Sequence record: NC_074654.1
DNA: 18,655 bases
Strand: one strand, 5' to 3'
Shown here: positions 781 through 18,554 of the stretch, piece by piece
Position numbering within the stretch: the first letter of the stretch is position 1
How the letters are laid out: every line of letters starts with the position of its first letter
Position numbers and translations under genes: made by a program
The notes under the pieces: model-generated
What the model was told of the DNA's origin: nothing
What the model saw: the letters and a program-made list of their open reading frames with translations, nothing else
Database searches by the model: none

Positions 781-801
781 TGGTGGTTAGATTGTCCCGG
801 G

Positions 802-809: not shown

Positions 810-835
810 GGTGCCTGCCGTGGTTCTTGCCGGAC

Positions 836-2437: not shown

Positions 2438-2440
2438 GCC

Positions 2441-2584
2441 ATGAAGTGGGTCTGTAAGGAGTCGGTTAACGAGCACGGCGTAAAGATGGTGGTGTGCCGG
2501 CCGCTATTCCCTAGCGAGGAAAAGGGGGAGGGCGAAAAAGACAGGGTGCCCGTCCTCCGGTTCTACGAGGGAGGGATTCTATAG
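2441..2584 (+). CDS. 47-aa microprotein MKWVCKESVNEHGVKMVVCRPLFPSEEKGEGEKDRVPVLRFYEGGIL (not in ORF track)
   Basis: ATG 3 nt after the helicase stop; TATAAATA at 2416-2423; T6 tract right after its TAG. Confidence 0.7.
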   Translation: MKWVCKESVNEHGVKMVVCRPLFPSEEKGEGEKDRVPVLRFYEGGIL

Positions 2585-2666
2585 GTTTTTTACAGGTCCA
2601 CGTAATTTACGACCGGAGTAATTTACGGAACGTGGTAGAGTTCAATTTTACAGATCGAGGTAAAAA
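2584..2666. repeat. Intergenic box cluster 1 (four TTAC-N7/8-GTAA boxes)
   Basis: Boxes at 2590-2605 (N8), 2607-2621 (N7), 2623-2638 (N8, ends GTAG), 2648-2663 (N8); 2603-2637 matches 9063-9097 at 33/35. Confidence 0.9.
2586..2591 (+). terminator. Oligo-T archaeal terminator candidate
   Basis: TTTTTT immediately after stop 2584; similar tracts follow stops at 8811-8816, 9754-9758, 14252-14257 and 16015-16020. Confidence 0.5.
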
Positions 2667-2711
2667 TGGCCCGGCGAAATAACTCTAAATAGGGAATTGT
2701 TATGGCTTCTT

Positions 2712-3029
2712 ATGTCCTCCCTAATAGTAGAGGCCTTCGGCAAGATCATAGAGGAATTGGCCTCCCTCGATTGCGACAAAATGAGGCGGCACGAGATAAA
2801 CGGCCGCCTCTACGTGAGGATTAGAAAGCTGAGGGACGCCTCGCTATACCTAGAGGTGCTGAGGACCATATTCGGCGTAGAGGGGGCCTTTAAGTCCGAC
2901 AAGCTCATATACATACCGTGCGACGCCCTCCCCCTCATACGTGAGAGGGCCCTAGCCCTAGGAATATCACCAAAGCCAAGGACGCGGGTAGGCCCACAAG
3001 ATAGTAATAGCGTCGCGAGAGTAGGGTGA
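2712..3029 (+). CDS. 105-aa hypothetical protein, possible winged-helix DNA-binding domain
   Basis: ATG 2712 with CTAAATA about 25 nt upstream; weak similarity by eye to the helicase C-terminus (YLE.L ... hhhPC). Confidence 0.7.
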   Translation: MSSLIVEAFGKIIEELASLDCDKMRRHEINGRLYVRIRKLRDASLYLEVLRTIFGVEGAFKSDKLIYIPCDALPLIRERALALGISPKPRTRVGPQDSNSVARVG

Positions 3030-3885
3030 ACTTGACCGCTATTGCGAATAGGTTAAGGAGCGAGGGGTAGGTAGAGCCGGCCCCAGCCACAAGGAGCATA
3101 ATAACGGCCGGCACGGACACTTGGTCGTGGACGGCCGACGCCAGCATGGTGGCCACCGCCTCGGCGTCCGACTCTGACCCCACTATCCTGGCGTAGATGG
3201 CCCTTATCATGAGGGCGGCCACCAGGTCCGGCAATGCCGTCAAGAAGGCCGACGTGAGGCCCAGCCCCACCTCCGTGACCGTGAGGGCGTATATGTCCTG
3301 TATTAGGTAGTATGTGCCGTAGGCCATGCCTATGGTGTTCAGCAAGGCCGTCGCTATGACCGAAAGGGGCGGCCGGCCTCCCACCACCTCGCCAAGGTTC
3401 AGCACTATCAAGGCCGGCAAGGCCACATAGCCGGCAACCACAAGCATGGTCGAGATAAAGGCCGATTGTATGCCGGACCTGGCGTAGAGGTCCACGGTCA
3501 AGGCGGCCGCGGACCACATTATGAGGGACGGCAATAGGCGCCTAATGTAGGGGGACCCCGGGGCGTAGGGGCGGACTAAAGCCGTCACAAACACGGCGTC
3601 CACCACCGTGCTGAGGATAGTGTCTATCCATGCCGCCTCTACGTTGCCTCCCAAGGCGAGGGACACGGCACTAATAGCCTGGGGCATGGCCGAAAGGGCC
3701 GACACCACCATGACATTGTACCACACCCTCACGTCGTAGAGGGCTATGGTTATCTCGGTGGCGTATGAGGCCGACGCGAGGATAATGAGCCACATGGCTA
3801 TCCCCACCCAAGGGGAATTGACCACCATTAGGCCTATGGTCGCAAGCCCCATAACGAATTCGGCCCATATTAGGCGGTTATCCAT
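2935..3885 (-). CDS. Polytopic membrane protein, degenerate CaCA (Na+/Ca2+ exchanger) superfamily
   Basis: About 10 TM segments; two alpha-repeat-like motifs, SALSAMPQ..IDTILSTVVD and AFLTALPD..ATMLASAVHD, versus canonical GTSLPE..GNxxGSNxxN/D. Start taken at ATG 3885, not the track's TTG 4050. Confidence 0.7.
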   Translation of the reverse strand: MDNRLIWAEFVMGLATIGLMVVNSPWVGIAMWLIILASASYATEITIALYDVRVWYNVMVVSALSAMPQAISAVSLALGGNVEAAWIDTILSTVVDAVFVTALVRPYAPGSPYIRRLLPSLIMWSAAALTVDLYARSGIQSAFISTMLVVAGYVALPALIVLNLGEVVGGRPPLSVIATALLNTIGMAYGTYYLIQDIYALTVTEVGLGLTSAFLTALPDLVAALMIRAIYARIVGSESDAEAVATMLASAVHDQVSVPAVIMLLVAGAGSTYPSLLNLFAIAVKFTLLSRRYYYLVGLPASLALVIFLGLGPSHV

Positions 3886-3910
3886 ATATTGGCATATATC
3901 ACCGGTATTA

Positions 3911-4345
3911 ATGCCTCGCAGAAAGGTGAGGGAGTACAACCCCTCCGAGAGCGACACCATGAGCCTAAAGGGCACCACCGCGGCCTTGAAACATGCCGAA
4001 TTGGTCCTCGTGGCCTCCCCCACATGCCCGGCGTGCAAGGCCCTATTCAAGTCAAAAAGCGTGAGGTACTACGCCTCTAAGGGCGTCATAACCGTGGTGC
4101 CTCCGGACCGCATGAGGCTGGAGGACATGGGCGAGTGGGTCCTGGACTCTAAGGGCTTGGTCCTCATGGCCTCTACCCCCACCTTTCTAGTTAGGTGCAA
4201 GGACGGCCGCGTCCTGTGGCGCTATAGGGTCCAAGCCGTCGATATATACAATGCCGACGCGGTCATGCAATTGGTCCTCGGCACGTTCAAGAGCCTGGCA
4301 ATTGAGTGCATGCCCGAGGACGCGGCCGGCGTAGAGGGCCTATGA
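3911..4345 (+). CDS. Thioredoxin/glutaredoxin-like CxxC protein
   Basis: ASPTCPACK active-site motif (CxxC at 4025-4036) after a beta-strand, plus downstream STPTF cis-Pro-like motif. Start at ATG 3911 or 3959. Confidence 0.72.
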   Translation: MPRRKVREYNPSESDTMSLKGTTAALKHAELVLVASPTCPACKALFKSKSVRYYASKGVITVVPPDRMRLEDMGEWVLDSKGLVLMASTPTFLVRCKDGRVLWRYRVQAVDIYNADAVMQLVLGTFKSLAIECMPEDAAGVEGL

Positions 4346-4446
4346 ATTGCGATTGTATGCAAAAAATCATAGAGGAATTGGTGCGTAGGGGGGTGGTAAG
4401 CAAGGAGGACGCCAAGAAGATGGCCGAGAAATTGGCCAAGGCATGA
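4342..4446 (+). CDS. 34-aa microprotein MNCDCMQKIIEELVRRGVVSKEDAKKMAEKLAKA (not in ORF track); SHOCT-like helical pattern
   Basis: ATGA overlap with the upstream stop (4342-4345) and ATGA overlap with the downstream start (4443-4446). Confidence 0.8.
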   Translation: MNCDCMQKIIEELVRRGVVSKEDAKKMAEKLAKA

Positions 4447-4721
4447 TTCCGTGCAAGGCCGATAGCATGGCCGAAATAGTGAGGCGGGTCCGGGACGCCT
4501 TAAAGCCCCTAGGCAACTACTACGTGTTCAGCTCAGACCTTGCCGATTGCCTCACGAGGATAAAGCTGGCCTTGCTCATGTACGCCCGTCAGACCGGGGA
4601 CGCCATGGTGTACGCCTACGCCAATTTCAATTTCAATTGCCCCGGCAACATGTGCGTCGTGCCTCCCTCGATTATGGAGGTGCTGGACTTCGCCCTAATC
4701 ACTATAGCAAGTTCAGCATAA
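4443..4721 (+). CDS. 92-aa hypothetical protein
   Basis: Coupled start, typical codon usage, followed by a TATA box for the next gene. Confidence 0.75.
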   Translation: MIPCKADSMAEIVRRVRDALKPLGNYYVFSSDLADCLTRIKLALLMYARQTGDAMVYAYANFNFNCPGNMCVVPPSIMEVLDFALITIASSA

Positions 4722-4729
4722 CATAGCTT

Positions 4730-4736
4730 TTTATAA
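4730..4736 (+). promoter_or_regulatory. TATA box (TTTATAA) for gene 4756
   Basis: Starts 26 nt upstream of the ATG. Confidence 0.7.
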
Positions 4737-4755
4737 GGTCGGCTTTGACCCGGCC

Positions 4756-5466
4756 ATGTTCAAGTTGCTTGACTATCTGTCAAGGCAGTTGAAACCCCTA
4801 AGGATAACCGAGAGGGAGCTCTGCCCGTCCTCAGCACTCTCCGAGTGGCTTGGCCTCGACATAGGGACCCGGTGCATACCGTTGACCCCAGCCGCATACG
4901 GGGAGCTTATCAAGCTATTCAAGCCCTTCGGCAAGGACTACATAGCTGAGGGCTATCTACTGCCCGACACCGTGAGGATTATATCATGCCGCCTCGTGTT
5001 GCTCACGCTAGAGGGGCAGGAGACCCACGAGGTCCTCTACGACGTGAGGACCAATACCTACGGCATAGCCATAGGCGGTGGGTTCAAGCCCCTAGAGGGG
5101 CTGGTGCCGTACACGTGCCCGCCCACCGGCTTCATGGTTGCCGTCGGGACCGTGGTGGACCTGGGGACGCGAGCCAAGCTGGCCATATACCTCCCCAATG
5201 ACCTATACGTCAAGTGGGCCAGGGCCGTCATAAGCAACAACATAGAGGGGGCCCTAGACGTGGTCAAGGTCATGAGGGCCGTGGTCGCGGGTTATGAGAA
5301 GACCGTAGAGGCCCTAAGGAGCCAGCTGGTGAGTGCCTTCGCGGACCAGGCAACCACAATAGAAAGCATATTCCAGCAGTACTTTAGGCCCTTGGAAACG
5401 GCTGAGCGGGTCCTTAGGACCGAAAGGGAAAGGGGCGGAGGCCGGCCGCAACCAGCCCCGCCCTAA
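4756..5466 (+). CDS. 236-aa soluble hypothetical protein with C-terminal helical/coiled-coil region
   Basis: Own promoter, long ORF, typical codon usage; no motif recognised. Confidence 0.85.
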   Translation: MFKLLDYLSRQLKPLRITERELCPSSALSEWLGLDIGTRCIPLTPAAYGELIKLFKPFGKDYIAEGYLLPDTVRIISCRLVLLTLEGQETHEVLYDVRTNTYGIAIGGGFKPLEGLVPYTCPPTGFMVAVGTVVDLGTRAKLAIYLPNDLYVKWARAVISNNIEGALDVVKVMRAVVAGYEKTVEALRSQLVSAFADQATTIESIFQQYFRPLETAERVLRTERERGGGRPQPAPP

Positions 5467-5535
5467 TTTTACCTCGATTCGTAAGATTCCCGGGGCACCA
5501 ATTTTACCACGTTTCGTAAATTACGTCCGGAGTAG
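5467..5535. repeat. Intergenic box cluster 2, between convergent genes
   Basis: TTAC-N8-GTAA at 5469-5484 and 5504-5519; TTAC-GTCCGGA-GTAG at 5521-5535; 5463-5488 matches the start of cluster 4 (around 11696-11721) at 25/26. Confidence 0.9.
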
Positions 5536-5620
5536 GAAATACCCTTTAGGTATGTCAACACAAAAGCATGCCGAAAAAGGGAGTATATAGGGACGGCAGC
5601 TATAGAAAAAAGTAAAGTGT

Positions 5621-6376
5621 TTACGGCTGGACGGTGAACTGATAGGTCCCGGGCTGACTCGTGTATATGCCCCAAGCCGGCAGTATTCCCGAGGGAGGCG
5701 AGGACCACGACCCTAGCGATATGGTCACCGGGTTGCCGTTGACGTAGGCCGTGCCGTGGACCACGTATATCCTGTAGGTGGCGCCCGATATAGGCATGCC
5801 GTTATCGCTAGATGCCGGCACGTAGACGTAGTAGAGCAAGCCCGTTATGTTATATGTGTAGGCCGTCAGTAGAACCGCGGCTTGGGCCGGTTTGTAGAGT
5901 ATATAGCCATAGCCGGCCGTCGCGTTAGCCCATACATACACGGTGCCTGAGGTGTCGGTGAAATTGAGCGTAGGCGTGGTGGTCGCTATGCCGAATAGGT
6001 ACAGCTGATAGCCGTTCACGGTCACGTAGGCGTTGCCGTAGGTTATATTGGCCGACTTGACGGAGCCGCCATAGGCGATTATGTCGTAGAGCGACCCAAA
6101 CCCTTGGGCGCTATAGGTGCATGAGCTGGCGCCGCACGTGACATAGCTTGGCACGTACACCAGGGAGGCCGGATTAGCCGGCCCGCTCTTGGGCTGGAGG
6201 GTGCTGACGGGTGCGCTAGTCGTGGTGGTGGTGGGGCTGGGCGAGGGTCCTGTGACCACGGTGCCGGACCTGCCGGTCATGTAGAGCCATATTATGTACC
6301 CCAAGACCGCTATGATTATCAACGCAACGACGGCCATGGCCGCCCTTTCGCGCGACCGATTGTGTATATTGGCCAT
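5621..6376 (-). CDS. Membrane-anchored S/T/P-rich, beta-rich surface protein with class III (pilin-like) signal peptide motif
   Basis: Charged n-region RSRERA|AM then hydrophobic helix; PSPSPTTTTTS linker; four ectodomain N-x-T sequons; Tyr/Thr/Gly-rich body. Confidence 0.8.
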   Translation of the reverse strand: MANIHNRSRERAAMAVVALIIIAVLGYIIWLYMTGRSGTVVTGPSPSPTTTTTSAPVSTLQPKSGPANPASLVYVPSYVTCGASSCTYSAQGFGSLYDIIAYGGSVKSANITYGNAYVTVNGYQLYLFGIATTTPTLNFTDTSGTVYVWANATAGYGYILYKPAQAAVLLTAYTYNITGLLYYVYVPASSDNGMPISGATYRIYVVHGTAYVNGNPVTISLGSWSSPPSGILPAWGIYTSQPGTYQFTVQP

Positions 6377-6394
6377 GTGCGGATAGTGGCGCGG

Positions 6395-6404
6395 ATATAA
6401 ATAT
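6395..6404. promoter_or_regulatory. Bidirectional TATA element (ATATAAATAT)
   Basis: Centred between divergent ATGs at 6376 (-) and 6423 (+), about 26-27 nt from each. Confidence 0.75.
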
Positions 6405-6422
6405 ACTGAGCTCTATTCCTCT

Positions 6423-7280
6423 ATGCAATTAAGGGACCTGTTTAGGGCGGCCGCCTCTACGGCCGCGATAGCCTCGGGGCTTGCCGTATTCGCCCTAGAC
6501 CCTACGCCGATAGGCCTATTGGCGGCCCTAATGTACGCCGGATTCGCATACGCCATATTCCAATATTGGGGTCAGCTGGAGAACCCCCTATTGATATTGC
6601 TCTACGTCCTCATGGTGTTTGCCGTGGCCATAAACGTCTACCAGCTGGTGATTTTCGCGGCCGTCGTGATAGCCCTCGTGGTGGCCGCTAAGAGGCCCAG
6701 CCTGGCCACGAGGCCCGGCCCCACCTTGGTCTATCCCCTAAGGCTTGCCGGCCTGGCCGCGGGGATATTGGCCGCGCCCCTAATACTGTGGTATGAGGCC
6801 ATACGGAGGGGCACGTGGCTCTACCGCCTCTATATGGTCCTCGGAGGCATAGGCCTAGTCCTAGCCATGGTGGGGCTGGGCTTCGACGTGAGGCCCATAG
6901 CCTCCCTCCTTGCGACGCCCATGCTGGGCCAATACCTCCAAATTGAGCCCGACGCCTCGCCTCTGTGGTGGCTTGGGGCCATAGGCTGGGAGGAATTCAT
7001 ATCGAGGGCCGCGGGACCCATGGGCAACGCCTTTTGGGTCATATTGCATTTTCCCACGAGGTACCTAATCATAGGCGTGCTTGGGGCCATAGGGGCCGTG
7101 TCCTATATCCAGATAGGCGCCCGGTGGCTGTGGGACACCTATGAGCGGGGAGGGATTATAGGGTCCCTCATAGGCCATGCGACCTACAACGCGGTGCTGT
7201 CCCTATTGATAGAGGTCCCCATTACGCTATGGCCCTTGGTCATTATTGCCGCGATAACATTATACTTCGTCGGGTGCTGA
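6423..7280 (+). CDS. CPBP/Abi (type II CAAX protease-like) intramembrane glutamic/metalloprotease
   Basis: All three family motifs in order in a multi-TM protein: EEFISR (EExxxR, 6990-7007), FWVILH (FxxxH, 7032-7049), HATYN (HxxxN, 7176-7190). Confidence 0.88.
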   Translation: MQLRDLFRAAASTAAIASGLAVFALDPTPIGLLAALMYAGFAYAIFQYWGQLENPLLILLYVLMVFAVAINVYQLVIFAAVVIALVVAAKRPSLATRPGPTLVYPLRLAGLAAGILAAPLILWYEAIRRGTWLYRLYMVLGGIGLVLAMVGLGFDVRPIASLLATPMLGQYLQIEPDASPLWWLGAIGWEEFISRAAGPMGNAFWVILHFPTRYLIIGVLGAIGAVSYIQIGARWLWDTYERGGIIGSLIGHATYNAVLSLLIEVPITLWPLVIIAAITLYFVGC

Positions 7281-7374
7281 TTAGGGGCAACGCCATGGTG
7301 AACGGCACGATATACGGCAACTATACGGAGATACCCTGTAAATAGCCATATAAAACGCCCACCTTTTTCCGGCC

Positions 7375-7761
7375 ATGAGGGCCATAGCTTTGGCATTGGC
7401 TATACTCATGATAGCCATAGCGGCCTACTACCTCATGAACCCTCCCAAGCCCAAGGTGGTGGTCGTGGGCCCGCCTCAGACCGCGACCAATACAAATACA
7501 ACGCCTCCCACGTCAACGCCTCAGACCCCGCCTCCGGCCCAGCAATACATATGCAATTCAACCATGATATCGGTGGACGGCGTGAGGGCTTGCGGAGTTA
7601 TCCAATACCAATACCCCACGGTGGTGGTGGCCGCGCCCGGCTGGCTTGCCGGCAAATTCCAGATAGCGGGTATCCAAGGCGCATGCATATTCACCGTGCA
7701 ATATGGCGAGGTGCTGGTGTCGGGGCCCGGCTGTGTGGTAACGATAAATATCCCCTCGTGA
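7375..7761 (+). CDS. Signal-anchored protein with P/T-rich linker and small Cys-containing beta domain
   Basis: N-terminal hydrophobic helix, PPQTATNTNTTPPTSTPQTPPP linker, 4 Cys; ATATAAAA at 7348-7355. Confidence 0.82.
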   Translation: MRAIALALAILMIAIAAYYLMNPPKPKVVVVGPPQTATNTNTTPPTSTPQTPPPAQQYICNSTMISVDGVRACGVIQYQYPTVVVAAPGWLAGKFQIAGIQGACIFTVQYGEVLVSGPGCVVTINIPS

Positions 7762-7769
7762 CCTAGGAC

Positions 7770-7985
7770 ATGCTTGACATATTGAAATCGAGCTCTAAGC
7801 CGCTATATTGCCTGGTGACCCCCATGCCTAACGGGGACATATCCATAGAGTGCGAGCCCAAGGACCTCAGGAAATACGTCGATATGGAAAGGGTGTGCGC
7901 CATAGAGATTCACAAGGACGGCAGGGCCTATACAATGTGCGACAAGGGGACGGCCATAGTCGCCAGGCTTGCCTCCCTTAGGTAA
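7770..7985 (+). CDS. 71-aa protein with two tandem C-x7-G-x5-C hairpin motifs
   Basis: CLVTPMPNGDISIEC and CAIEIHKDGRAYTMC; ATAAATAT 26 nt upstream; TAATG coupling to the next gene. Confidence 0.78.
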   Translation: MLDILKSSSKPLYCLVTPMPNGDISIECEPKDLRKYVDMERVCAIEIHKDGRAYTMCDKGTAIVARLASLR

Positions 7986-8470
7986 TGGATTGGCTAAAGA
8001 AGGCCCTTGTCCTTTTTTACCTCGGGACCGTCATAGGGGCCTCGTGGGTCCAGCTGGCCCTATTCTTCGGCATACCCGCGCCCGCGGGGATAATCCTGAC
8101 CCCCTCCGACATGCCGTATATGCCTCCCCTATCCGTGGTCTTCTTGGCCCCCACGGATACGTGCCAAGGCTGGAGCCTCTACTACCAGCATGGCCGCCTA
8201 TTCGGGGTCCTCGATATCCAGATACCGACTATCCACTACTTTGACTCGGGCTATATGGTGTTCAACTACTACGTGATCACCGGCAACCCGGCGGCCGACG
8301 TGGTGGACTATTTCAAGGCCCTCCTATTCCCAGATATAGTGATTGTAAAGGCCGATAGCGTCCAATGCACGGAGAGGGTCGTGGCCTACATACCGGGCTA
8401 TTTCACCGTGGTCCTCATGCTGGTGACCATACCGATACGGCTGGTATACAAGTTCAGGCGGGTATGGTAG
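7985..8470 (+). CDS. 161-aa membrane protein (N- and C-terminal TM segments)
   Basis: TAATG overlap; hydrophobic ends flank a beta-rich domain. Confidence 0.8.
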   Translation: MDWLKKALVLFYLGTVIGASWVQLALFFGIPAPAGIILTPSDMPYMPPLSVVFLAPTDTCQGWSLYYQHGRLFGVLDIQIPTIHYFDSGYMVFNYYVITGNPAADVVDYFKALLFPDIVIVKADSVQCTERVVAYIPGYFTVVLMLVTIPIRLVYKFRRVW

Positions 8471-8475
8471 AAAGA

Positions 8476-8483
8476 TATAAATA
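8476..8483 (+). promoter_or_regulatory. Consensus TATA box (TATAAATA) with purine-rich BRE-like upstream sequence
   Basis: GAAAGA-TATAAATA, 22-28 nt upstream of ATG 8498/8504. Confidence 0.75.
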
Positions 8484-8497
8484 GCGGTGGCAACCCT

Positions 8498-8800
8498 ATG
8501 GTCATGTCCGAGCAATTAACGGTATCGCCAGCAATGGCCGGCCGCTTCCAGATAGGCAGTTACCCCGACACGGTCACCGGTACGCCCTTCGTAGAGATGA
8601 CTGAGGAAAAGTATAAGCGTCGCTATGCCATAGGCGTGTGCATGGCCCTTCAGAAGGCCGACCCCCAGACATTTAATAGCGTCTTTGGGAGCCTGGAGAA
8701 TTGCGTCAGGCAGGCTGGGGCCTTCGCGGACTTTAACTTTGACAAGTGGAAGATATCGTGGCCCGCTAACCTATCGACCGCTATCGCGACCTTCGGCTGA
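8498..8800 (+). CDS. About 100-aa soluble protein; candidate abundant structural protein (inference only)
   Basis: Own consensus promoter, T-tract after the stop, basic KYKRRY helix; start 8498 or 8504. Confidence 0.8.
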   Translation: MVMSEQLTVSPAMAGRFQIGSYPDTVTGTPFVEMTEEKYKRRYAIGVCMALQKADPQTFNSVFGSLENCVRQAGAFADFNFDKWKISWPANLSTAIATFG

Positions 8801-8834
8801 TATAACCTTATTTTTTAGTCCCCTTCTATCCCCC

Positions 8835-9065
8835 ATGGACCCGCTCACCTACTTGACGGACCCCACCACGTGGCAGGCTATCATAGACCTGCTGAGGCAG
8901 ATATTTTCCTGGGTCATGTCGGCAAACCCCCTAGCCTTGATTTTTGTCGGGGCCGTCGTGGCATTTATCGGAAAGAGGGTTATCGAGGCCGTGGGCCTCC
9001 TTATACTGATATACGGCGTGGTCAAGCTGGTGGCGCCCCTAATAGGCGTCCACTTGCCTTTTTAA
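8835..9065 (+). CDS. 76-aa small membrane protein (2 TM)
   Basis: ATG 8835 (MDPLTYL..) rather than the track's 8685, which lies inside the previous gene. Confidence 0.78.
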   Translation: MDPLTYLTDPTTWQAIIDLLRQIFSWVMSANPLALIFVGAVVAFIGKRVIEAVGLLILIYGVVKLVAPLIGVHLPF

Positions 9066-9112
9066 TTTACGTCCGGAGTAATTTACGAAACGTGGTAAAA
9101 TACGTCCGGAAT
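9063..9112. repeat. Intergenic box cluster 3
   Basis: TTAC-N7-GTAA 9067-9081, TTAC-N8-GTAA 9083-9098, then degenerate ATAC-GTCCGGA-ATAG; upstream of TATA at 9125-9133. Confidence 0.9.
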
Positions 9113-9150
9113 AGCGGTCAATATTAATATATAGGGGCCTACGGCATGAC

Positions 9151-9753: not shown

Positions 9754-9808
9754 TTTTTCCCTACCCTAACTATTTCGGCATAGGTATTTTTAAGGTAGGT
9801 AATTCGGC

Positions 9809-11126: not shown

Positions 11127-11155
11127 GATTTAAATAACCATATTCATTTTGACCT

Positions 11156-11699: not shown

Positions 11700-11777
11700 T
11701 TTTACCTCGATCCGTAAGATTGATTTTTACCACGTTCTGTAAATTACGTCCGGTGTAATTTACAAATCGAGGTAAGA
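11700..11777. repeat. Intergenic box cluster 4, including a 53-bp imperfect palindrome
   Basis: N8 boxes 11702-11717, 11727-11742, 11760-11775; N7 box 11744-11758; arms 11725-11747 and 11755-11777 are inverted at 19/23. Confidence 0.92.
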
Positions 11778-11800
11778 TTAGCTGGGTCCGGATAGGCGGC

Positions 11801-11869
11801 CAAGTCCCCCAATTGAAAGGCATTAAATTCCCGGGTGTCGGCGTGTGGCAGCCGTTTCTATTTGTAAAG
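11801..11869 (+). repeat. Internal 69-bp inverted repeat, copy A
   Basis: Exact reverse complement of 16302-16370. Confidence 0.97.
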
Positions 11870-11919
11870 TGCGACGGCCTTTAAGGCAAGCAATATAAAT
11901 TCGGACCGTAGTGGGGTCT

Positions 11920-12663
11920 ATGATAATCCCGCTAGCATTGGGGTCGCTAGCCGCCTTGATACTCGTGGCCCTAATGGGGAGCCGCAACATGCTGGTGTAC
12001 ATACTTATAGAGATATTCGTGTCGGGGGCCTTGGCCCTTGCCGGCGTTGCCGCGTCCACATACGCCCTATTCTCGGGTCTATTCATAGCGGCCATGGCCC
12101 TATGGATAATAACCCACGTAGAGGAAAGGGTGGTTGAAAGGGCCGTGGTGACGCTTTTATCGGTGACCCTGGTGTGGGCCTCTAACAACGCGGTGGCCGC
12201 CCAAGCCCTAGGCGCCCTATCCTATGACATAATCGAGCCCTTCTTCGCGGCATTGGCCACGGTGGGGGACGTGGTGCTGGGCGTCTCGGGCTTCGGTGCC
12301 CTATTCGCCTACATGGTCCTATCCAGCCGCATACTGTCGCTAGCTGAGGAAAACCCGCTAGTGGCTATAGGCTATGTCTACCTCGCCAATGCCGTCCTGT
12401 CGGCCTTGGTGGCGCCCATGCCGGACTTTCTCAAGCTTGCCCTAGGCCTGGCCTTGCTGTACCCGCTAGGGAGGGCCATTAGGGGCAACCTTGAGGCCCT
12501 AGCTGAGGTCGCGCCCGTCCTCTACCTCCTGCCTATCCAGCCCTCGGTCCTGGTACAGCTGGGTGCGGTCATGGCCCTCGTGGAATTGGCTATGGCGATA
12601 CTGTCGCGCAAGCACTTGGTGGGGGCCGCCATGTGGGCCGCGGCCTTGCTATTCGTGGCATGA
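11920..12663 (+). CDS. Polytopic membrane protein (about 8 TM)
   Basis: Almost wholly hydrophobic; ATG 11920 is 26 nt after TATAAAT (11894-11900). Confidence 0.82.
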   Translation: MIIPLALGSLAALILVALMGSRNMLVYILIEIFVSGALALAGVAASTYALFSGLFIAAMALWIITHVEERVVERAVVTLLSVTLVWASNNAVAAQALGALSYDIIEPFFAALATVGDVVLGVSGFGALFAYMVLSSRILSLAEENPLVAIGYVYLANAVLSALVAPMPDFLKLALGLALLYPLGRAIRGNLEALAEVAPVLYLLPIQPSVLVQLGAVMALVELAMAILSRKHLVGAAMWAAALLFVA

Positions 12664-13568
12664 GCTCGTTCATACCGGACCTAGCCGAATACTCGGCCCT
12701 TTTAATACTCGCCATTTTCCTGCCCACCTTGGTCTATGGCGCCATGTCCATGTACCTCGGACCGTCGCCTAACCTGTTTATTATCCAGGCAATAGCCCTA
12801 GCGGCCGTGACCGTAAAGCTGGCTAGGGAGAACCTATTTGACGGGGTTCTATTCGCGGCCGGGGCCTCGATATTCACGGCCATAGCCTACCTCGTGCCCG
12901 TCCCCAAGCTATTCATAGAGGGCTTTAGCGCAATATTGGGGCCCTTTATCAACACCCTGCTGAGCACCGTCATAGAGTTCTTCGCCTTCGGCCTCGCCAT
13001 AGGGGCCATTATGGGCCTTGCCGGCATATTCGTGTCGTTCATAGCCGGCATTATCGGCTTTCTGCTAACGGCCTTTATCATGATATTCGCGAGGCTGTCC
13101 AGGCTGGTGTATGAGGCCACCGAGGCGGCCACGTCACTATTCATTAAGGCCGTGCCGGAGGGGGTCGGAGCCGTCCTGGCGCCCTACTTCGGAGGCATTG
13201 TCATAGCGGCCCCCATAGCCGTGGCCATATCGGTCATAGCCGCGGCCGCGGCCCTATGGCTTGGCATGCTCATAGGCATGGCCATAACCGGCGTGCTATT
13301 CCTCAACGTGAACCTGATACTCTACGGCCTGGCCTCGATATTTTCGGCCGTGTTGCTGAGGCCGCAGTCAATTCCCGTCATAGACATGGCCATGGACATA
13401 GCGGCCCTTGTCCTGGTGCCCTACGTGGTGCCCGTCCTGTGGACCGTGGGCTATGCCTTGCTGTCAAGCCGGAGGTACGCCCACCGCGGCATGTACTTTA
13501 TCGGCATATCGGCCGCGGCCGTGGTGGTCTACGCCCAAGCCGCCTCTATCCTCACGGCCATAATTTAA
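12660..13568 (+). CDS. Polytopic membrane protein (about 9 TM), transporter-like
   Basis: ATGA coupling with the previous gene; Gly/Ala-rich TM helices. Confidence 0.82.
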   Translation: MSSFIPDLAEYSALLILAIFLPTLVYGAMSMYLGPSPNLFIIQAIALAAVTVKLARENLFDGVLFAAGASIFTAIAYLVPVPKLFIEGFSAILGPFINTLLSTVIEFFAFGLAIGAIMGLAGIFVSFIAGIIGFLLTAFIMIFARLSRLVYEATEAATSLFIKAVPEGVGAVLAPYFGGIVIAAPIAVAISVIAAAAALWLGMLIGMAITGVLFLNVNLILYGLASIFSAVLLRPQSIPVIDMAMDIAALVLVPYVVPVLWTVGYALLSSRRYAHRGMYFIGISAAAVVVYAQAASILTAII

Positions 13569-13591
13569 ATGGTAGGTGTTTTTTATTACCT

Positions 13592-13897
13592 ATGCATAAC
13601 ATGGTAACAAAAGCCAAGGCCAAGAAGTGCGACGTGGGCGGATACCTAAGGGCCGGCCGGACGCTCTACTACGTAGGCGACCCGAATACCGCGGTCATGT
13701 ACGCCAGGGTGATAGAGGGCCTCATAAGGTCCAGGCGTAGGCCCAAGTGCGCCAAGTGCGGCAGGGCCGTAGAGGGCATGGCCCATGCCGTCGTGTGGGA
13801 CACTTGCGAGGGCATAGAGGGGGCCCTATGCTGGTCGTGCGCCTCTAAGTACCTAAACTACATGGTATGGGACAACGACGGTGCGATAAGGCTATGA
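13592..13897 (+). CDS. Zinc-finger protein (CxxC..CxxC)
   Basis: CAKC and CWSC pairs; TTTAAAT at 13564-13570; start 13592 or 13601 rather than the track's 13256. Confidence 0.78.
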   Translation: MHNMVTKAKAKKCDVGGYLRAGRTLYYVGDPNTAVMYARVIEGLIRSRRRPKCAKCGRAVEGMAHAVVWDTCEGIEGALCWSCASKYLNYMVWDNDGAIRL

Positions 13898-14247
13898 GCG
13901 AGAAGCCGATAAGGGTGTCCACGGTGCCCTATGAGTATCTGCTGTGCATAGCGCTCAAATTGCTGGCCTACTATTCCCGCGGCAACGGGGTCCTTATGCC
14001 CGTGGACACCAAGAAGGTGAACTACGTCCTCCGCAAGGTGGACAAAAACCTAACCGCGACCCAGATCCTGGTGTCCTCGGTCCTGAACTTCCTAAAGCCG
14101 TTCACGGTGCGCGTGGGCCGAAAGAAGCTGGTCCGCCTAAGCCGCGACGCCATACCGGAGTACTTCGCCATGGTCGGCAAGTCTGTCGATTGCCGTGCGT
14201 GGGACCGGAGGCTGGTCGGCCGGGACCCGCGCTTCGGCCTCAAATAA
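13894..14247 (+). CDS. 117-aa basic protein, possible winged-helix regulator
   Basis: ATGA coupling; same apparent secondary-structure order as gene 11156. Confidence 0.75.
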   Translation: MSEKPIRVSTVPYEYLLCIALKLLAYYSRGNGVLMPVDTKKVNYVLRKVDKNLTATQILVSSVLNFLKPFTVRVGRKKLVRLSRDAIPEYFAMVGKSVDCRAWDRRLVGRDPRFGLK

Positions 14248-14276
14248 TCCATTTTTTAATTGGGCTTATTTCCTAT

Positions 14277-15038
14277 ATGCGCAAGATCCCAATTCCGCTA
14301 ATCGCGGCGGCCGTATTCCTGTCGGCCGTGACCATATACATAACCATAACCATACAGACCATACTGTCCTATGACCCCACATATGTCAGTTTCAACGGCA
14401 CTAACTATATCGTGACCGTGTCGGGCTCTAGCCCCTACGACACCTTTCCGCCCATGTACATAGACGTGGTCAATATCTCACAGGTGTATACGGTGACCTC
14501 GATAGGCTATGGGTCCTCCGACACTTGGTATACATGCCAGGCTGGCGGGTGCGACATAGGCCTCACGATTGTCAACTTCCCCAGCATGCCCAATGCGACG
14601 GCCCTAAATCCCAAGTCCGGCGTGTACGTCTACAAGATGAACACCGGCAACGTGGTGCTGGTGTACGGCACGGCCACCACCTCCGGAGGCACGTCGGGCT
14701 ATATCATATGGCCCTACGTCCTTGTCGCGACGTCCGGGTCGGAGTACTTCTTCATCCTGGCGACCCAGGCACAGACACCGGCCTCTACCATATGCTCAAT
14801 GTCCCCCTTCAGCACGGCCGGCACGGCCGTTATCCAGGCGAGGGACGCCTACTATGTGTGTCCCCTCGCCTCGTGGTCCTCAGGCACGTCCTCCCTTGTC
14901 AAGACCGGATACGTGTCCGTGGGGGCCGGCACGTCGCTAGGCTATAAGGAGATCTATTCCTACTCGTGGGGGTCGATAATCCTACACCCGTGGTACTACG
15001 TGACGTCTAGCGCCTATATCGTGGGCAAGCCAAATTAA
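14277..15038 (+). CDS. Secreted/virion beta-rich protein, MRK[IV]PIPL-leader family member 2 (fibre/adhesin candidate)
   Basis: MRKIPIPLIAAAVFL start at 14277, not the track's 13944; S/T/Y/G-rich; 3 sequons; 4 Cys. Confidence 0.85.
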   Translation: MRKIPIPLIAAAVFLSAVTIYITITIQTILSYDPTYVSFNGTNYIVTVSGSSPYDTFPPMYIDVVNISQVYTVTSIGYGSSDTWYTCQAGGCDIGLTIVNFPSMPNATALNPKSGVYVYKMNTGNVVLVYGTATTSGGTSGYIIWPYVLVATSGSEYFFILATQAQTPASTICSMSPFSTAGTAVIQARDAYYVCPLASWSSGTSSLVKTGYVSVGAGTSLGYKEIYSYSWGSIILHPWYYVTSSAYIVGKPN

Positions 15039-15059
15039 TAAATTTCCCATATTTTCTAC

Positions 15060-16007
15060 ATGCGCAAGATACCCATACCGCTAATAATAGCGGCCGTATT
15101 CCTAGTTGCGGTGGCAATATACATAACCTACACGGTGAACACGGCCGCACCGCCTATATGGACGTCGGCCGCTAACCAGACCATAAACCTGGTGACGCCC
15201 CAGACATATTTCATCTACGGCACGGAGTTCAACAGGGTGGTGGACGGCAAGTCCTTGACCACGGTGAGCCAGCTGGGCTCTAGGCTGGCCACGATAGCCG
15301 TGAACAACACGGCCTATATACCGTGGATAATTGTAAGCGAGTCCAAGGTGTCGGGCTCTATAGGCTCACCCGATATAGGTGTGGGTAGTGCCACGATTAA
15401 TCTGCCCATGCTTCTCGCCATGGCCTACAACGAGAGCCAGCTGGCCAGCATGTACGGCACTAACACCATATGTGTCACGATAAACGGGACGTCGGTGACC
15501 CTCCAGGTCAACCCCTCGGGGGCGCCCGGGTATATCGCGCTAGGCTATGTATTCAAGAACTCTTACAATTATCTATTCGGTCTAGAGGTTGAATACTACT
15601 ACGTGGGCAAGGTCGTGACGGCCAACGGCTTTACTTGGTACATGTACCTACTCGCACCCATGGCCGGAGCCGCGACGGGCAAGATAACGCTATCAACCTA
15701 CGCCTGTAGTTACACCACGTCCTCAGCAATACCGACCGAGGTCACGCAGGTCGGCGTGTCGGGCTATCTACCTTATGTAACTATTTATTATAATTCGGGT
15801 TATTCGGGTTATACAAACTTTAATTTCCAATTCACCCAGGTCGCTAACGTGACCACAAGCACCACGCCCGTGTCGGTGCCGGCTGGGTCGGGCTCTACCA
15901 TATATGGGCCGGGCACAAACCCCATGGTGCTGGGCGTCGCTCTGCCAATGGAGGCCTACGCTTTCCCGGTTAATAACGGTCCGGTGCAAATAACCTATAG
16001 CCCGTAA
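15060..16007 (+). CDS. Secreted/virion beta-rich protein, MRK[IV]PIPL-leader family member 3 (fibre/adhesin candidate)
   Basis: MRKIPIPLIIAAVFL; 5 sequons; TTAATAAA 25 nt upstream. Confidence 0.87.
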   Translation: MRKIPIPLIIAAVFLVAVAIYITYTVNTAAPPIWTSAANQTINLVTPQTYFIYGTEFNRVVDGKSLTTVSQLGSRLATIAVNNTAYIPWIIVSESKVSGSIGSPDIGVGSATINLPMLLAMAYNESQLASMYGTNTICVTINGTSVTLQVNPSGAPGYIALGYVFKNSYNYLFGLEVEYYYVGKVVTANGFTWYMYLLAPMAGAATGKITLSTYACSYTTSSAIPTEVTQVGVSGYLPYVTIYYNSGYSGYTNFNFQFTQVANVTTSTTPVSVPAGSGSTIYGPGTNPMVLGVALPMEAYAFPVNNGPVQITYSP

Positions 16008-16040
16008 CCGAATATTTTTTCTACCTATCAATTTTCTAGT

Positions 16041-16181: not shown

Positions 16182-16201
16182 GCCGGCCTAACCCACCCAT
16201 T

Positions 16202-16238
16202 TTTTACCACGTTTCGTAAATTACGGGTCGAGGTAAAT
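16202..16238. repeat. Intergenic box cluster 5a
   Basis: N8 boxes 16204-16219 and 16221-16236 joined by CGTAAATTACG; 16202-16224 identical to 5502-5524. Confidence 0.92.
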
Positions 16239-16301
16239 TACCGACCTGCCCGTAGAATACCCCTCGCTTTGGGGCCTCGCCTATCCGGCAAGGCGGAGGC
16301 C

Positions 16302-16370
16302 CTTTACAAATAGAAACGGCTGCCACACGCCGACACCCGGGAATTTAATGCCTTTCAATTGGGGGACTTG
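16302..16370 (-). repeat. Internal 69-bp inverted repeat, copy B
   Basis: Exact reverse complement of 11801-11869. Confidence 0.97.
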
Positions 16371-16393
16371 TCCGGCCTCCTGGAGCCCGTCAT

Positions 16394-16430
16394 TTTTACC
16401 TCGATTCGTAAATTACGAAACGTGATAAGA
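16394..16430. repeat. Intergenic box cluster 5b
   Basis: N8 box 16396-16411 and near-perfect box 16413-16428 (ends ATAA). Confidence 0.9.
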
Positions 16431-16526
16431 TTCAGATATGTAAAATACATATTTCGGCGTGCCGGGCTTTCGGCGTGGCTAGTTGAAAGCTGAGCGGTAC
16501 CCTACATAGTTGAAAGACGTGGTTCA

Positions 16527-16565
16527 TTACACCCGTCGTAAATTACGGGGCCGATAAGTTTAAAT
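16527..16565 (+). promoter_or_regulatory. Promoter of the right-terminal operon with two N7 boxes directly upstream of the TATA
   Basis: TTAC-N7-GTAA 16527-16541, TTAC-N7-ATAA 16543-16557, TTTAAAT 16559-16565, ATG at 16587. Confidence 0.7.
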
Positions 16566-16586
16566 TTACCGGAATTTCCATAACCC

Positions 16587-16877
16587 ATGGCCAAACCAAA
16601 AGTCCACGGAAACTACCCCCGCGAACTGAACACCGTATTCCGGAATACGGGGGTAATGGTCAAGTGCCCCAAGTGCGGGGAGGAGGGCGCGCTAAGGGTC
16701 CACGTAGGCGGCTATCTCGTGGTGAGGCATTGGCACGGTGGGACCCACATGGTGCCGGCCGACCAGGAGGCCCAGGTCCTTAAGGGCGTAATAGACAGCC
16801 TGGTGAGTTTCAAGAAGGTCCTAGATGACGCCATAGCCACTATCCAAGGCGTCGTTGACAAGGCGGGGCATGACTAA
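16587..16877 (+). CDS. Zinc-finger protein (CPKCG..YLVVRH..H) with C-terminal helix
   Basis: CxxC followed by His residues, a pattern common in crenarchaeal mobile-element proteins. Confidence 0.8.
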   Translation: MAKPKVHGNYPRELNTVFRNTGVMVKCPKCGEEGALRVHVGGYLVVRHWHGGTHMVPADQEAQVLKGVIDSLVSFKKVLDDAIATIQGVVDKAGHD

Positions 16878-17244: not shown

Positions 17245-17621
17245 GGTCCAAATTCCTCCTTCAGCTGGCTGAGGCTGTAAGGGCGCTAGAGCCGCCCTCC
17301 GTGGGCCGGAGGCGTGTAGAGGTCCTTGAGAGGGGCGACGGCTGGATTATGTACAGGGTCGTGTCGGACACGAGTCTGAGGGTGGGCTATGCCAGCTGGC
17401 GCGACGGGCATTACAAGGTATTCGTCATGCTCACCGACTCGTGCGCCTTCTACAATGGCGACGGCCTGGTGACGGGTCACAGGCTGACGGTGCGCGATAT
17501 AGCGGACCTCATGGCCGTGAGGACCCGCGAGGAATTGATGCGGCTGGTGTGGCGGCACGTGAACGAGGCCCTTCAGCATGGGGAGAAAGAGCCGTGTGAG
17601 GGGGTGTGGGTGTTGCCGTGA
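17241..17621 (+). CDS. 126-aa hypothetical protein
   Basis: ATGA-coupled start at 17241. Confidence 0.78.
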   Translation: MRSKFLLQLAEAVRALEPPSVGRRRVEVLERGDGWIMYRVVSDTSLRVGYASWRDGHYKVFVMLTDSCAFYNGDGLVTGHRLTVRDIADLMAVRTREELMRLVWRHVNEALQHGEKEPCEGVWVLP

Positions 17622-17728
17622 GCCGCGACTATATCTTTAGGGTAGAGCTGAGGGTCATTAGGGCCTTGGCCGCGGCGTATGCCCTATTCCTCCTTGCCGA
17701 AATACTTGCGGCCGTGGTGGCGATATGA
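17618..17728 (+). CDS. 36-aa single-TM microprotein MSRDYIFRVELRVIRALAAAYALFLLAEILAAVVAI (not in ORF track)
   Basis: GTGA overlap upstream and ATGA overlap downstream; fills the gap exactly. Confidence 0.78.
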   Translation: MSRDYIFRVELRVIRALAAAYALFLLAEILAAVVAI

Positions 17729-18108
17729 GGCCTATAGAGGGCGTGGTGGTGGACGTGGACTTCGGCCTCTACCGCAAGACCCGCGAGGTGGTCTATTCCT
17801 CGGAGGGCGAGTCGCTCACCAGGGTGGTCCTGGCCGAGGGCGGGTGTCCGTGCGGGTCGGTGGTGCTGGCCTATCGACGCCACGGCCGTAGGTACACGGT
17901 GCTTGAGCTCACGGAGTACGGCGCCCCTAAGCTCACACTGAGGATAGAGACGGACAATAGGCCGTGGCGGGTCCTCCTTAAGACTAGGGTTGAGCTGTCT
18001 AAGGCCCAGGCTGAGGAAATTAGGCGGCGTATGCTGGAGGTGGGGTCGGTGGGCGGCTTCCTGGAGCTCATATACTACGTGGTGGGCGGCCTTGTCTATG
18101 GCCTCTAA
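17725..18108 (+). CDS. 127-aa hypothetical protein
   Basis: ATGA-coupled; beta-rich N-terminal half. Confidence 0.78.
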   Translation: MRPIEGVVVDVDFGLYRKTREVVYSSEGESLTRVVLAEGGCPCGSVVLAYRRHGRRYTVLELTEYGAPKLTLRIETDNRPWRVLLKTRVELSKAQAEEIRRRMLEVGSVGGFLELIYYVVGGLVYGL

Positions 18109-18196
18109 GTCGTGTTGCTTTATCATATGCCGGGGCCCCACGTGCACCAAGGTGTGTCCCTACATATTTATGGGGCTATATTTTGATTGGCCGTGA
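18098..18196 (+). CDS. 32-aa Cys-rich microprotein MASKSCCFIICRGPTCTKVCPYIFMGLYFDWP
   Basis: ATG overlaps the upstream gene end by 11 nt; GTGA overlap with the next gene; 3' part of the track's 17990..18196 ORF. Confidence 0.68.
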   Translation: MASKSCCFIICRGPTCTKVCPYIFMGLYFDWP

Positions 18197-18531
18197 GGTG
18201 GCTGACCCACATTATATGGGGCGTCGCGGCCCTCTCCTTTTTCTCCGTGGACCTGACTGTGGCGGCCGGCATGTCCTTTATCCATACGGCCTTGACCGAC
18301 GTATTCGGCCATACGGGACTACACCGCAATAGGTACCACGACATACTCGCCATATTTTGGGCCGTCCTAATCGCGGGACTCATTAAGAACCCCGCCTTTA
18401 TTGTCCTGGGTCCTTTGCACATAATATTGGACCTAATTTCTCCTGGGAGGTGGGGCGTGAATTGGGCCTACAATTCCCTATTCATAGCCTTGGCCGCGGC
18501 CCTATTAATGGCGAGGGGCGTGCCGATATAA
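18193..18531 (+). CDS. YdjM/DUF457-like membrane-bound metal-dependent hydrolase
   Basis: N-terminal THxxWG, TD..GH..HR..YH and LHIILD.ISPG motifs in a multi-TM protein match the family pattern TH..PD.D..HR..THS..H..LD. Confidence 0.72.
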   Translation: MRWLTHIIWGVAALSFFSVDLTVAAGMSFIHTALTDVFGHTGLHRNRYHDILAIFWAVLIAGLIKNPAFIVLGPLHIILDLISPGRWGVNWAYNSLFIALAAALLMARGVPI

Positions 18532-18554
18532 ATTACGTGGACCTGTAAAAAACC
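18530..18554. repeat. Box cluster 6 abutting the right ITR
   Basis: N8 box 18533-18548; 25-bp exact inverted match to 2584-2608. Confidence 0.9.

Follow-up and report, generated by a model that had tools for sequence, protein, structure and literature searches.

Dyad-symmetric TTAC-N7/8-GTAA boxes at the gene-block borders of the globulovirus TSPV1: a conserved intergenic system with a possible role in transcription control

The window analysed here is the complete 18,655-nt genome of TSPV1 (record NC_074654.1), a member of the Globuloviridae whose host is the hyperthermophilic archaeon Thermoproteus sp. CP80, and whose record annotates 31 proteins, all of them hypothetical. Between its genes lie short dyads, which we call boxes, each made of a TTAC arm and a GTAA arm held apart by seven or eight nucleotides (TTAC-N7-GTAA or TTAC-N8-GTAA; consensus W-TTAC-N7/8-GTAA-W). 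Sixteen perfect boxes fall in eight clusters at six gene-block borders, with 2.3-4.5 kb from cluster to cluster along the genome (Table 1). Twelve have the N8 spacer, against 0.22 expected and with none of 200 shuffled sequences reaching that number; four have the N7 spacer (2607, 9067, 11744, 16527; 0.19 expected). When spacings from 0 to 24 were scanned, enrichment appeared at N7 and N8 only, plus N24, the latter because boxes adjoin one another. Indeed, their flanks are A/T-rich and a single A or T joins adjacent boxes, giving a period of 16-17 bp, and the resulting junction palindrome CGTAAWTTACG is perfect at exactly five sites (2601, 5515, 16215, 16407, 16537; 0.03 expected). An initial annotation of this DNA had listed the twelve N8 boxes, two near-perfect boxes at 2623 and 16413, the five junctions and a few conserved spacer classes, all of which we recover; of its five N7 variants four are perfect, and the one at 5521 (TTACGTCCGGAGTAG) is merely near-perfect.

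The boxes are confined to non-coding DNA, as that annotation had proposed from an incomplete look at the genes. We split the genome using the annotated genes and two conserved unannotated open reading frames (ORFs; 2441-2584 and 2712-3029), which leaves 16066 nt coding and 2589 nt non-coding. In an exhaustive scan, all 16 perfect boxes lay in the non-coding part, where 0.18 would be expected, and none in the coding part, where 0.31 would be expected. Their position relative to genes is equally particular: the first box of a cluster series begins 1-5 nt past a stop codon in five of the six series and 22 nt past it in the sixth (cluster 5), which bears out the earlier claim that clusters begin at or just after a stop codon and divide the genome into blocks of 2.3-4.5 kb. 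A run of at least four T (T4-T6) stands immediately ahead of the first box in four of the six series; in the remaining two, cluster 3 has T5 then T3, and cluster 8 has T6 on the minus strand. Clusters 1, 3, 5 and 6 have runs of T5-T6, as does cluster 8 on its minus strand; at clusters 2 and 4 the run reaches T4 only, and inner boxes are preceded by T2-T3 only. Past the end of clusters 1, 3 and 4, a TATA-like element follows after 22-47 nt, which for cluster 3 is that of GP13 (about 9120-9135), whilst no annotated gene lies downstream of clusters 2 and 8.

Table 1. Boxes, longer repeats and genes of the TSPV1 genome discussed in the text (+ and - after a class letter give box orientation)
Feature	Coordinates	Strand or content	Remarks
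Class A box		TTACCACGTT..GTAA	
Class B box		TTACCTCGA...GTAA	
Class C box		TTAC.GGWCC..GTAA	
Class D box		TTACG.CCGG.GTAA	N7 spacer
Cluster 1	2590-2663	C+ D+ A- B-	C+ 2590-2605 (TTACAGGTCCACGTAA, T6 ahead, 5 nt past the stop of ORF 2441-2584); D+ 2607-2621; A- 2623-2638 (near-perfect, ends GTAG); B- 2648-2663
Cluster 2	5469-5535	B+ A+ D+	between convergent genes GP5 and GP6; B+ 5469-5484; A+ 5504-5519; D+ 5521-5535 (near-perfect)
Cluster 3	9067-9114	D+ A-	D+ 9067-9081; A- 9083-9098; third unit 9100-9114 degenerate, D-like, poorly conserved
Cluster 4	11702-11775	B+ A+ D+ B-	B+ 11702-11717; A+ 11727-11742; D+ 11744-11758; B- 11760-11775; pairing possible between the two B boxes, which are inverted
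Cluster 5	16204-16255	A+ B-	A+ 16204-16219 (T6 ahead); B- 16221-16236; box-like TTACCGACCTGCCCGTAG 16238-16255
Cluster 6	16396-16428	B+ A-	B+ 16396-16411 (T5 ahead); A- 16413-16428 (near-perfect); inverted partner of cluster 5 (34-nt arms)
Cluster 7	16527-16566	+	promoter-proximal N7 boxes TTACACCCGTCGTAA 16527-16541 and TTACGGGGCCGATAA 16543-16557; GP26 TATA box TTTAAATT 16559-16566, 1 nt past the second box and beginning 28 nt before the GP26 start codon
Cluster 8	18533-18548	C-	TTACGTGGACCTGTAA, then A6 (T6 on the minus strand); 1 nt past the GP31 stop, 4 nt before the right terminal repeat
X element, + copy	11776-11881	+	upstream of the promoter of GP19 (VP2 homologue)
X element, inverted copy	16290-16395	-	between clusters 5 and 6; TATA-like AATTTAAT 16342-16349 on the + strand
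Right inverted terminal repeat	18553-18655		partner 74-176; opens with TATA-like palindrome CCCTATTATATAGGG facing the C- box
Unannotated 47-codon ORF	2441-2584	+	TATAAATA 25 nt upstream; stop precedes cluster 1
Unannotated 105-codon ORF	2712-3029	+	directly downstream of cluster 1; TATA-like TCTAAATAGG 2684-2693
GP22	13894-14247	+	AlphaFold2 model of low confidence (predicted local distance difference test, pLDDT, 61); helix-strand-helix-helix-hairpin, winged-helix topology
GP26	16587-16877	+	PSV ORF131-like, PF22415, E = 1.3e-41

The clusters had been described as operon boundaries. They do stand at gene-block borders, but they are not the boundaries of this genome: a perfect A/T 8-mer stands at -23 to -34 before each of about 19 genes, so that boxes mark only a subset of promoter/terminator junctions, and T5-T6 runs without boxes close many other genes. 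A scan of the window with bacterial promoter and terminator models stayed at shuffle level, those models not being relevant to Archaea, and an Rfam search returned no RNA family at E up to 1. Folding of the RNA at 37 C gave z between -0.9 and -2.1 for six of seven clusters, cluster 4 alone being clearly stable (z = -6.1).

To place these observations in a comparative frame we gathered relatives by scanning hot-spring metagenomes with an alignment of the GP7 family, which yielded 14 TSPV1-like contigs, with GP7 at 85-96% amino-acid identity, and a further 18 from globuloviruses at a greater distance, and added right-end sequences by exact look-up of GP26 (L228-L237). Boxes occur at the same intergenic sites in every TSPV1-like genome (L075-L088, L228-L237); a dozen diverged genomes keep them in synteny, including where the sequence between the ends is exchanged or inverted. 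In alignments of clusters 1-4, each with 8-12 related genomes, identity to TSPV1 was 98.3% in the TTAC/GTAA ends (91% of columns invariant), 85.6% in the box spacers (53%), 92.5% at other intergenic positions (67%) and 93.4% at flanking coding positions (73%); ends and other intergenic positions differ at Fisher p = 1.5e-7, and the C and G of the arms are as invariant as their T and A. In IMG/VR, GP7 alone retrieved no relatives and the GP7 family alignment TTSV1 only; a scan there for tandem boxes gave 69 single matches in unrelated contigs, about the number estimated by chance, and one for the C-type box with T6 gave four isolated matches. Among the matches listed from bacterial and archaeal genomes there were only scattered ones, and none in Thermoproteales.

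Copy number, class and orientation of the boxes vary amongst relatives. The third box of cluster 2 is D+ in most genomes and A- in L078 and L079; the first box of cluster 3 is D+ in most and B+ in L084 and L088; the first box of cluster 2 is B+ in most and B- in L081, and the order of boxes differs in L084. Insertions of 62-63 nt consist of box-like units, as in cluster 2 of L081, where 63 extra nucleotides are composed of boxes, and six relatives (L078, L079, L081, L083, L084, L086) have in cluster 1 a 175-nt module, termed X, inserted in + orientation with a direct B- box on either side. Of the four indel loci longer than 40 nt within positions 200-16000, three lie inside box clusters, which are thus the main sites of structural change and hot spots of insertion and deletion. 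Since whole boxes are swapped or flipped in place, what selection maintains is a box at the site, with its ends, to a greater degree than the sequence inside the box or the way it points; this is the signature of a symmetric protein-binding site and argues against passive duplication; the coding frequency and the conservation that had been named as the test of passive duplication both came out against it, the relatives keeping their boxes. Within a class, variation is restricted to two or three spacer bases beside one GTAA, which gives each box one specific and one generic half. Together, these results support the boxes as a real, selected, dyad-symmetric system limited to intergenic DNA.

The dyad extends beyond the TSPV1-like genomes. 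PSV has seven perfect TTAC-N7-GTAA boxes against 0.64 expected. All seven stand 45-46 nt ahead of a start codon and belong to a terminator-promoter cassette that recurs in the genome; searching for repeats brings up nine copies of it, about 54-119 nt long. In this cassette the GTAA arm abuts the TATA box (CGTAAAATTTAAAAAT), that is, it occupies the position of the transcription factor B recognition element (BRE). PSV-type metagenome contigs show the same pattern, and the GP26 promoter of TSPV1 (TTACGGGGCCGATAA-G-TTTAAATT) has a matching layout. The other context is shared as well: T6-TTAC-nGGWCCnn-GTAA follows the stop codon of ORF137 in six PSV-type genomes, with a spacer identical to that of the TSPV1 C box in one of them (L104), and the two boxes of PSV2, its only ones, are B-like, T6-preceded and placed right after the gp17 stop. 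PSV-type genomes with the same dyad context share no nucleotide similarity. The dyad is thus, across lineages, a family-level element with two contexts, one after a stop codon with a T-run and one directly before a TATA box. TTSV1 has no TTAC...GTAA boxes; it carries instead a 95-nt dispersed intergenic module in three copies (5610-5704, 12067-12161 and 18533-18627 of L003), one of them syntenic with TSPV1 cluster 2, and GTGATATCAC-type palindromes adjoining TATA boxes in at least six cases. It seems that every globulovirus lineage uses an intergenic code of its own, and a TTSV1 without boxes and with palindromes of its own is what would be expected if site and binding protein are lineage-specific. 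The motif strings occur in no paper of the searchable literature, and the accessible globulovirus papers are silent on intergenic boxes, though the TSPV1 or PSV genome descriptions may mention them, and the promoter repeats of PSV may have been remarked upon before.

We posit that the boxes are operator sites of a dimeric regulator at transcription-unit borders, where an oligo-T terminator, a possible roadblock and control of a promoter would come together - a reading that we find plausible and hold tentatively. Binding, the dimeric state and the effect on RNA polymerase are what we infer here from the location of the boxes, their constraint, their conservation and their two contexts. Such a dimer would recognise both TTAC arms, whose centres lie 11-12 bp apart and hence on one face of the helix, and could fill the box arrays cooperatively. 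The oligo-T tract is the usual archaeal termination signal; behind it, at a gene end, the bound protein would stop or insulate RNA polymerase that reads through, and antisense transcription entering from the right terminal repeat would be blocked likewise at cluster 8. Against a TATA box or BRE, the same protein would tune or protect the next promoter, and the spacer classes A-D may set its affinity or its choice of partner.

Among the observations in favour of operator sites of this kind, the ends are under stronger constraint than every other class of site compared, and the C- box keeps its place at the boundary of the terminal repeat though the last gene differs between genomes. Of the options listed in the initial annotation, a binding code for a dimeric protein suits the near-invariant ends and the freer spacers, and a transcription roadblock fits best, the first box standing against a T4-T6 run after a stop codon in TSPV1, in PSV-type viruses and in PSV2. 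Its dismissal of simple promoter operators was too strong, as the dyad abuts the TATA box in PSV-type viruses and at TSPV1 GP26. Cluster 8 adjoins the TATA-like palindrome of the terminal repeat.

Which protein might bind? It is probably encoded by the virus, and two gene products can be put forward as weak candidates. GP26, of the PSV ORF131-like family, combines a C-x2-C motif and conserved histidines on a small predicted beta sheet with a long C-terminal helix (model pLDDT 83). This family occurs in the TSPV1-like and PSV-like lineages, which are rich in boxes, and is absent from TTSV1 and PSV2, and a box pair lies ahead of the ORF131-like gene in every lineage that has it; a fold search with the GP26 model matched only 2x5c (PSV ORF131) in the PDB. 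GP22 is a possible winged helix, judging from the topology of its model: the fold matches are not significant and are mostly winged-helix DNA binders, the best being 3ov8 and SSV1 F-93. Profile-profile comparison detected no TSPV1 homologue of ORF165a, a winged-helix protein of PSV, or of the PSV2 regulator; the one link it made was between GP21 and the ORF126 zinc-ribbon family. GP21 (13592-13897) has a C-terminal CxxC...CxxC zinc ribbon related to PSV ORF126 (2X5R; hhalign probability 96.9%), and since members of this family are present in all four lineages - PSV (two or more), PSV2, TTSV1 and TSPV1 - it does not discriminate as a binder.

Several points weigh against the operator reading. 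Most predicted promoters and many T5-T6 gene ends are without boxes, so that boxes are unnecessary for ordinary initiation or termination. The T-run abuts the box, closer than the usual distance between a roadblock and the active site of the polymerase, and the conserved spacer classes are left unaccounted for. On the protein side, Pfam and PHROGs revealed no helix-turn-helix or ribbon-helix-helix domain in TSPV1 proteins, the PDB search gave no DNA-binding fold match for GP26, PSV2 has two boxes yet no ORF131 homologue, and the predicted structure of GP22 is too low in confidence to make it a clear DNA-binding protein; the box binder may instead be a host factor.

Other readings share part of this evidence. 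The clusters could be multi-purpose 'homologous regions' of the baculovirus kind, bound by a viral dimer and acting mainly as enhancers and/or internal origins of replication, with boundaries a secondary matter. Eight dispersed clusters of one to four dyads each, in mixed orientation and prone to structural change, are in keeping with this, as is the 405-nt non-coding region 16182-16586, which unites boxes, inverted repeats, an AT-rich palindrome and the MRYTGAAAG motif common to the terminal repeats. Origins, however, need no coupling to stop codons, T-runs and the TATA boxes of PSV, no replication initiator gene was recognised with Pfam, and linear genomes with terminal repeats are expected to initiate at their ends, all of which makes us regard the idea as improbable. 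Replication iterons, another of the early suggestions, do not fit boxes spread over eight loci in mixed orientation, again with no initiator recognised. A role in condensation or packaging, with the boxes as nucleation or anchoring sites through which a virion protein would organise the helical nucleoprotein core, was also on the original list. It can appeal to the roughly regular spacing of 2.3-4.5 kb, to the box that abuts the terminal repeat and to the nucleoprotein filaments that form globulovirus cores, but sites of that sort have no tie to stop codons, T-runs or TATA boxes, and TTSV1 has homologous structural genes and no boxes; with nothing supporting a packaging code as such, we consider this very improbable.

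Might the boxes work without a dedicated protein, as signals intrinsic to DNA or RNA? Oligo-T terminators in which the TTAC/GTAA arms merely prolong the T/A runs of both strands, or hairpins in the transcript, would account for the T4-T6 beside outer boxes and recall the T5-T6 at many other gene ends, and cluster 4 and the cluster 5/6 pair can make long stems via their inverted B boxes. Yet inner boxes have T2-T3 only, the C and G are as invariant as T and A despite variable spacers, and T-runs explain neither them nor the GTAA arm. The arms are 4 bp long, the folds of six of the seven clusters barely improve on shuffles at 37 C and would improve on them still less at the growth temperature of the host, and the promoter-proximal copies of PSV are not at gene ends, so we doubt an intrinsic signal about as strongly as we doubt the baculovirus-like one. 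It is quite improbable, too, that the boxes are selfish or passively spreading mini-repeats, comparable to repetitive extragenic palindromes (REP) and bacterial interspersed mosaic elements (BIME) or to mobile cassettes, kept by gene conversion or a recombinase, any function being secondary, and with module exchange as their main consequence. Replacement and inversion exactly at box borders, the X module between direct B- boxes, the insertions of box-like units and the three of four long indel loci that fall in clusters do look the part. Against these stand ends better conserved than nearby intergenic DNA, syntenic positions, a dyad context that persists in PSV-type genomes without nucleotide similarity, and the failure to detect a transposase or recombinase. 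The related notion of junctions for module exchange is borne out in so far as indels are bounded by boxes and boxes are swapped; identity to relatives, whether calculated by block or in sliding windows, is unchanged at clusters, which are thus not clearly exchange breakpoints.

Comparison with known systems, whose features are given here as general knowledge, brings us back to the operator reading. In logic, the boxes come closest to Reb1/TTF-I sites and to operator arrays of the lambda type, and in layout to baculovirus homologous regions (hrs) and REP/BIME. The Sal box bound by TTF-I in mouse and the Reb1 site of yeast are RNA polymerase I roadblock sites at terminators and promoters: repeated short sites lie downstream of the unit with a T-rich element just upstream, and a further copy precedes the next promoter. 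The roadblock layout recurs here, with all six first boxes 1-22 nt past a stop codon with a T-run, and the same in PSV-type viruses and PSV2. Those sites are, however, eukaryotic, asymmetric, orientation-dependent and bound by Myb-like factors, whereas TSPV1 boxes are dyads that abut the T-run, with termination predicted; no Myb-type factor domain was found in TSPV1 proteins with Pfam, and the resemblance is one of logic only. With lambda OR/OL and the F55 sites of SSV1, the boxes share pseudo-palindromes of 15-17 bp with one conserved and one variable half, arrays of two to four with short A/T linkers, recognition by a dimer in the known cases, and, in PSV and at TSPV1 GP26, contact with the core promoter. 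A constrained dyad of about 15-17 bp, the mark of an operator, is what the invariance of the ends (91%) against the spacers (53%) describes. Unlike such operators, the boxes of TSPV1 mostly stand 20-110 nt ahead of a promoter or have no promoter following, and they come in four spacer classes and at eight scattered loci instead of in one control region.

Baculovirus hrs are likewise dispersed intergenic clusters of imperfect palindromes, variable in copy number and orientation and hot spots of rearrangement, but their palindromes are about 30 bp, bound by IE1 and of demonstrated enhancer or origin activity, whereas a TSPV1 box measures 15-16 bp and is linked to stop codons and T-runs. REP/BIME resemble the boxes in being short extragenic repeats of several types, frequent at 3' ends and between convergent genes, clustered in alternating orientation and with set linkers; REP are, however, hairpin palindromes mobilised by REP-associated tyrosine (RAYT) transposases, and the boxes have 4-bp arms and no significant single-box fold. 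A Pfam scan of 32 proteins revealed no transposase domain, RAYT/Y1 or otherwise, and no recombinase, replication initiator or Myb-type domain. Without a Myb-type factor, hairpin units, a transposase or a single origin cluster, all of these remain analogies, not family assignments. The PSV cassette shares with TSPV1 GP26 the TTAC-N7-GTAA dyad and its relation to the TATA box, and with the genome at large the post-stop C-type box with T6; in PSV, the box is part of a long repeated terminator-promoter cassette at a fixed -45, whereas TSPV1 has multiplied free-standing boxes, in four classes, to form arrays.

Some boxes are embedded in longer repeats. Positions 2602-2665 are the inverse of 11700-11763; 2584-2609 are a perfect 26-nt inverse of 18529-18554, including the box of cluster 8; and a 127-nt inverted repeat, 87% complementary (11755-11881 and 16290-16416), flanks GP19-GP25. 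The last contains the two X elements of TSPV1, in which a B- box is followed by 46 nt, AATTGAAAGGC, the TATA-like ATTAAATT (11822-11829 in the + copy) and GCAGC...TTTCTATTTGTAAAG. Bounded by B boxes, about 110-175 nt long and present in two or three copies per genome at sites and in orientations that differ among relatives, the X module looks like a portable promoter cassette. A PSV repeat that comes after stop codons has the 3' part of the X module in common, plus a T-run and TTAC-N6-GTAA. Free-standing X copies run on into a GC-rich repeat or hairpin and a short T-run, with no Rfam match; they might be the source of a small RNA. The motif MRYTGAAAG has seven sites, all non-coding (17, 153, 11811, 16352, 16481, 16508 and 18568), which fall within the terminal repeats, within each of the X elements and, at two places, ahead of the GP26 promoter. 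Its complement CTTTCAAYT is found in PSV promoter cassettes about 10 nt upstream of the box. The AT-rich palindrome of the region 16182-16586 is 17 nt long (ATATGTAAAATACATAT, 16436-16452).

At the genome ends, the terminal repeat is perfect only for 74-176 against 18553-18655. The right ends of two relatives (L233, L235) run on with the complement of window positions 1-73, and the deposited right terminus thus appears to be about 73 nt short. The repeat is dense in short CTGAAW/TTGAAW units and holds ACATATGT-type sequences related to the 17-nt AT-rich palindrome, one of which forms a TTACATATGTACGTAA box there in L075 and L076. Some relatives have an extra last gene of 243 codons between the GP31 homologue and the C- box (12006-12737 in L228; also in L233 and L235). 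In these a plain promoter follows the GP31 homologue, whilst the C- box stays beside the terminal repeat, accompanied by 21 nt left over from the 3' end of GP31; L229 has, instead of the 243-codon gene, a 116-codon minus-strand gene after the C- box. With T6 on the minus strand and a box facing CCCTATTATATAGGG, the orientation of cluster 8 would suit a block of inward antisense transcription.

The comparison also bears on the gene map. ORFs 2441 and 2712 are kept in all ten close relatives that cover the region, each with a TATA-like element 25-28 nt upstream; the second shares 95 nt with the 3' end of GP2, which lies on the opposite strand, and the substitutions of this ORF among relatives, some of them synonymous, resemble those of coding DNA. 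The annotated start of GP19 is GTG 11911. All relatives keep ATG 11920 unchanged, and a perfect A/T 8-mer (AATATAAA) starts 28 nt ahead of it, which makes this ATG the likelier start. Around 7272-7374, all seven aligned relatives have 206 extra nucleotides that hold an 87-codon gene between GP7 and GP8, a gene that TSPV1 has lost. GP23 and GP24 (14277-16007) share a 95-nt repeat at their starts and are thus paralogues; some relatives have an extra paralogue of this type, of about 309 codons. Relatives diverge far more in the GP24 region (about 14900-16000; 56-92% identity) than anywhere else in the genome, a pattern that would suit a host-interaction protein. Conversely, the 85 nt from cluster 2 to the GP6 stop (5536-5620) are nearly invariant, more so than expected. 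They contain a small inverted repeat (ATACCCTTTAGGTAT), with a minus-strand T6 right after the GP6 stop, and are probably the terminator or 3' untranslated region of GP6.

To conclude, these results give the TSPV1 annotation two missed genes, a probable correction of a start codon and a truncated terminal repeat, and they do so in a family, the Globuloviridae, on whose gene expression and replication almost nothing is known and nearly all of whose proteins are without assigned function. Archaeal termination is currently ascribed to oligo-T tracts plus FttA/aCPSF1 and Eta, and we know of no roadblock terminator in Archaea. We could speculate further that globuloviruses encode a dedicated boundary factor on TTAC-N7/8-GTAA, which would stop the polymerase at oligo-T and shield the next promoter, in the manner of the Reb1/TTF-I sites of eukaryotic Pol I, and which in TSPV1 would have expanded into a four-class code that also blocks antisense transcription from the terminal repeat. 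This bolder proposal we regard as rather unlikely; if true, it would be the first terminator or insulator system in Archaea based on factor-bound DNA, that is, on a roadblock. More generally, if the boxes turn out to terminate or insulate transcription by way of a factor, a new mode of transcription control would be added for Archaea. Whatever their mode of action, they are a family-wide cis-element with a defined sequence, defined positions and natural variants, and as such a bait for the first DNA-binding regulator of these viruses.

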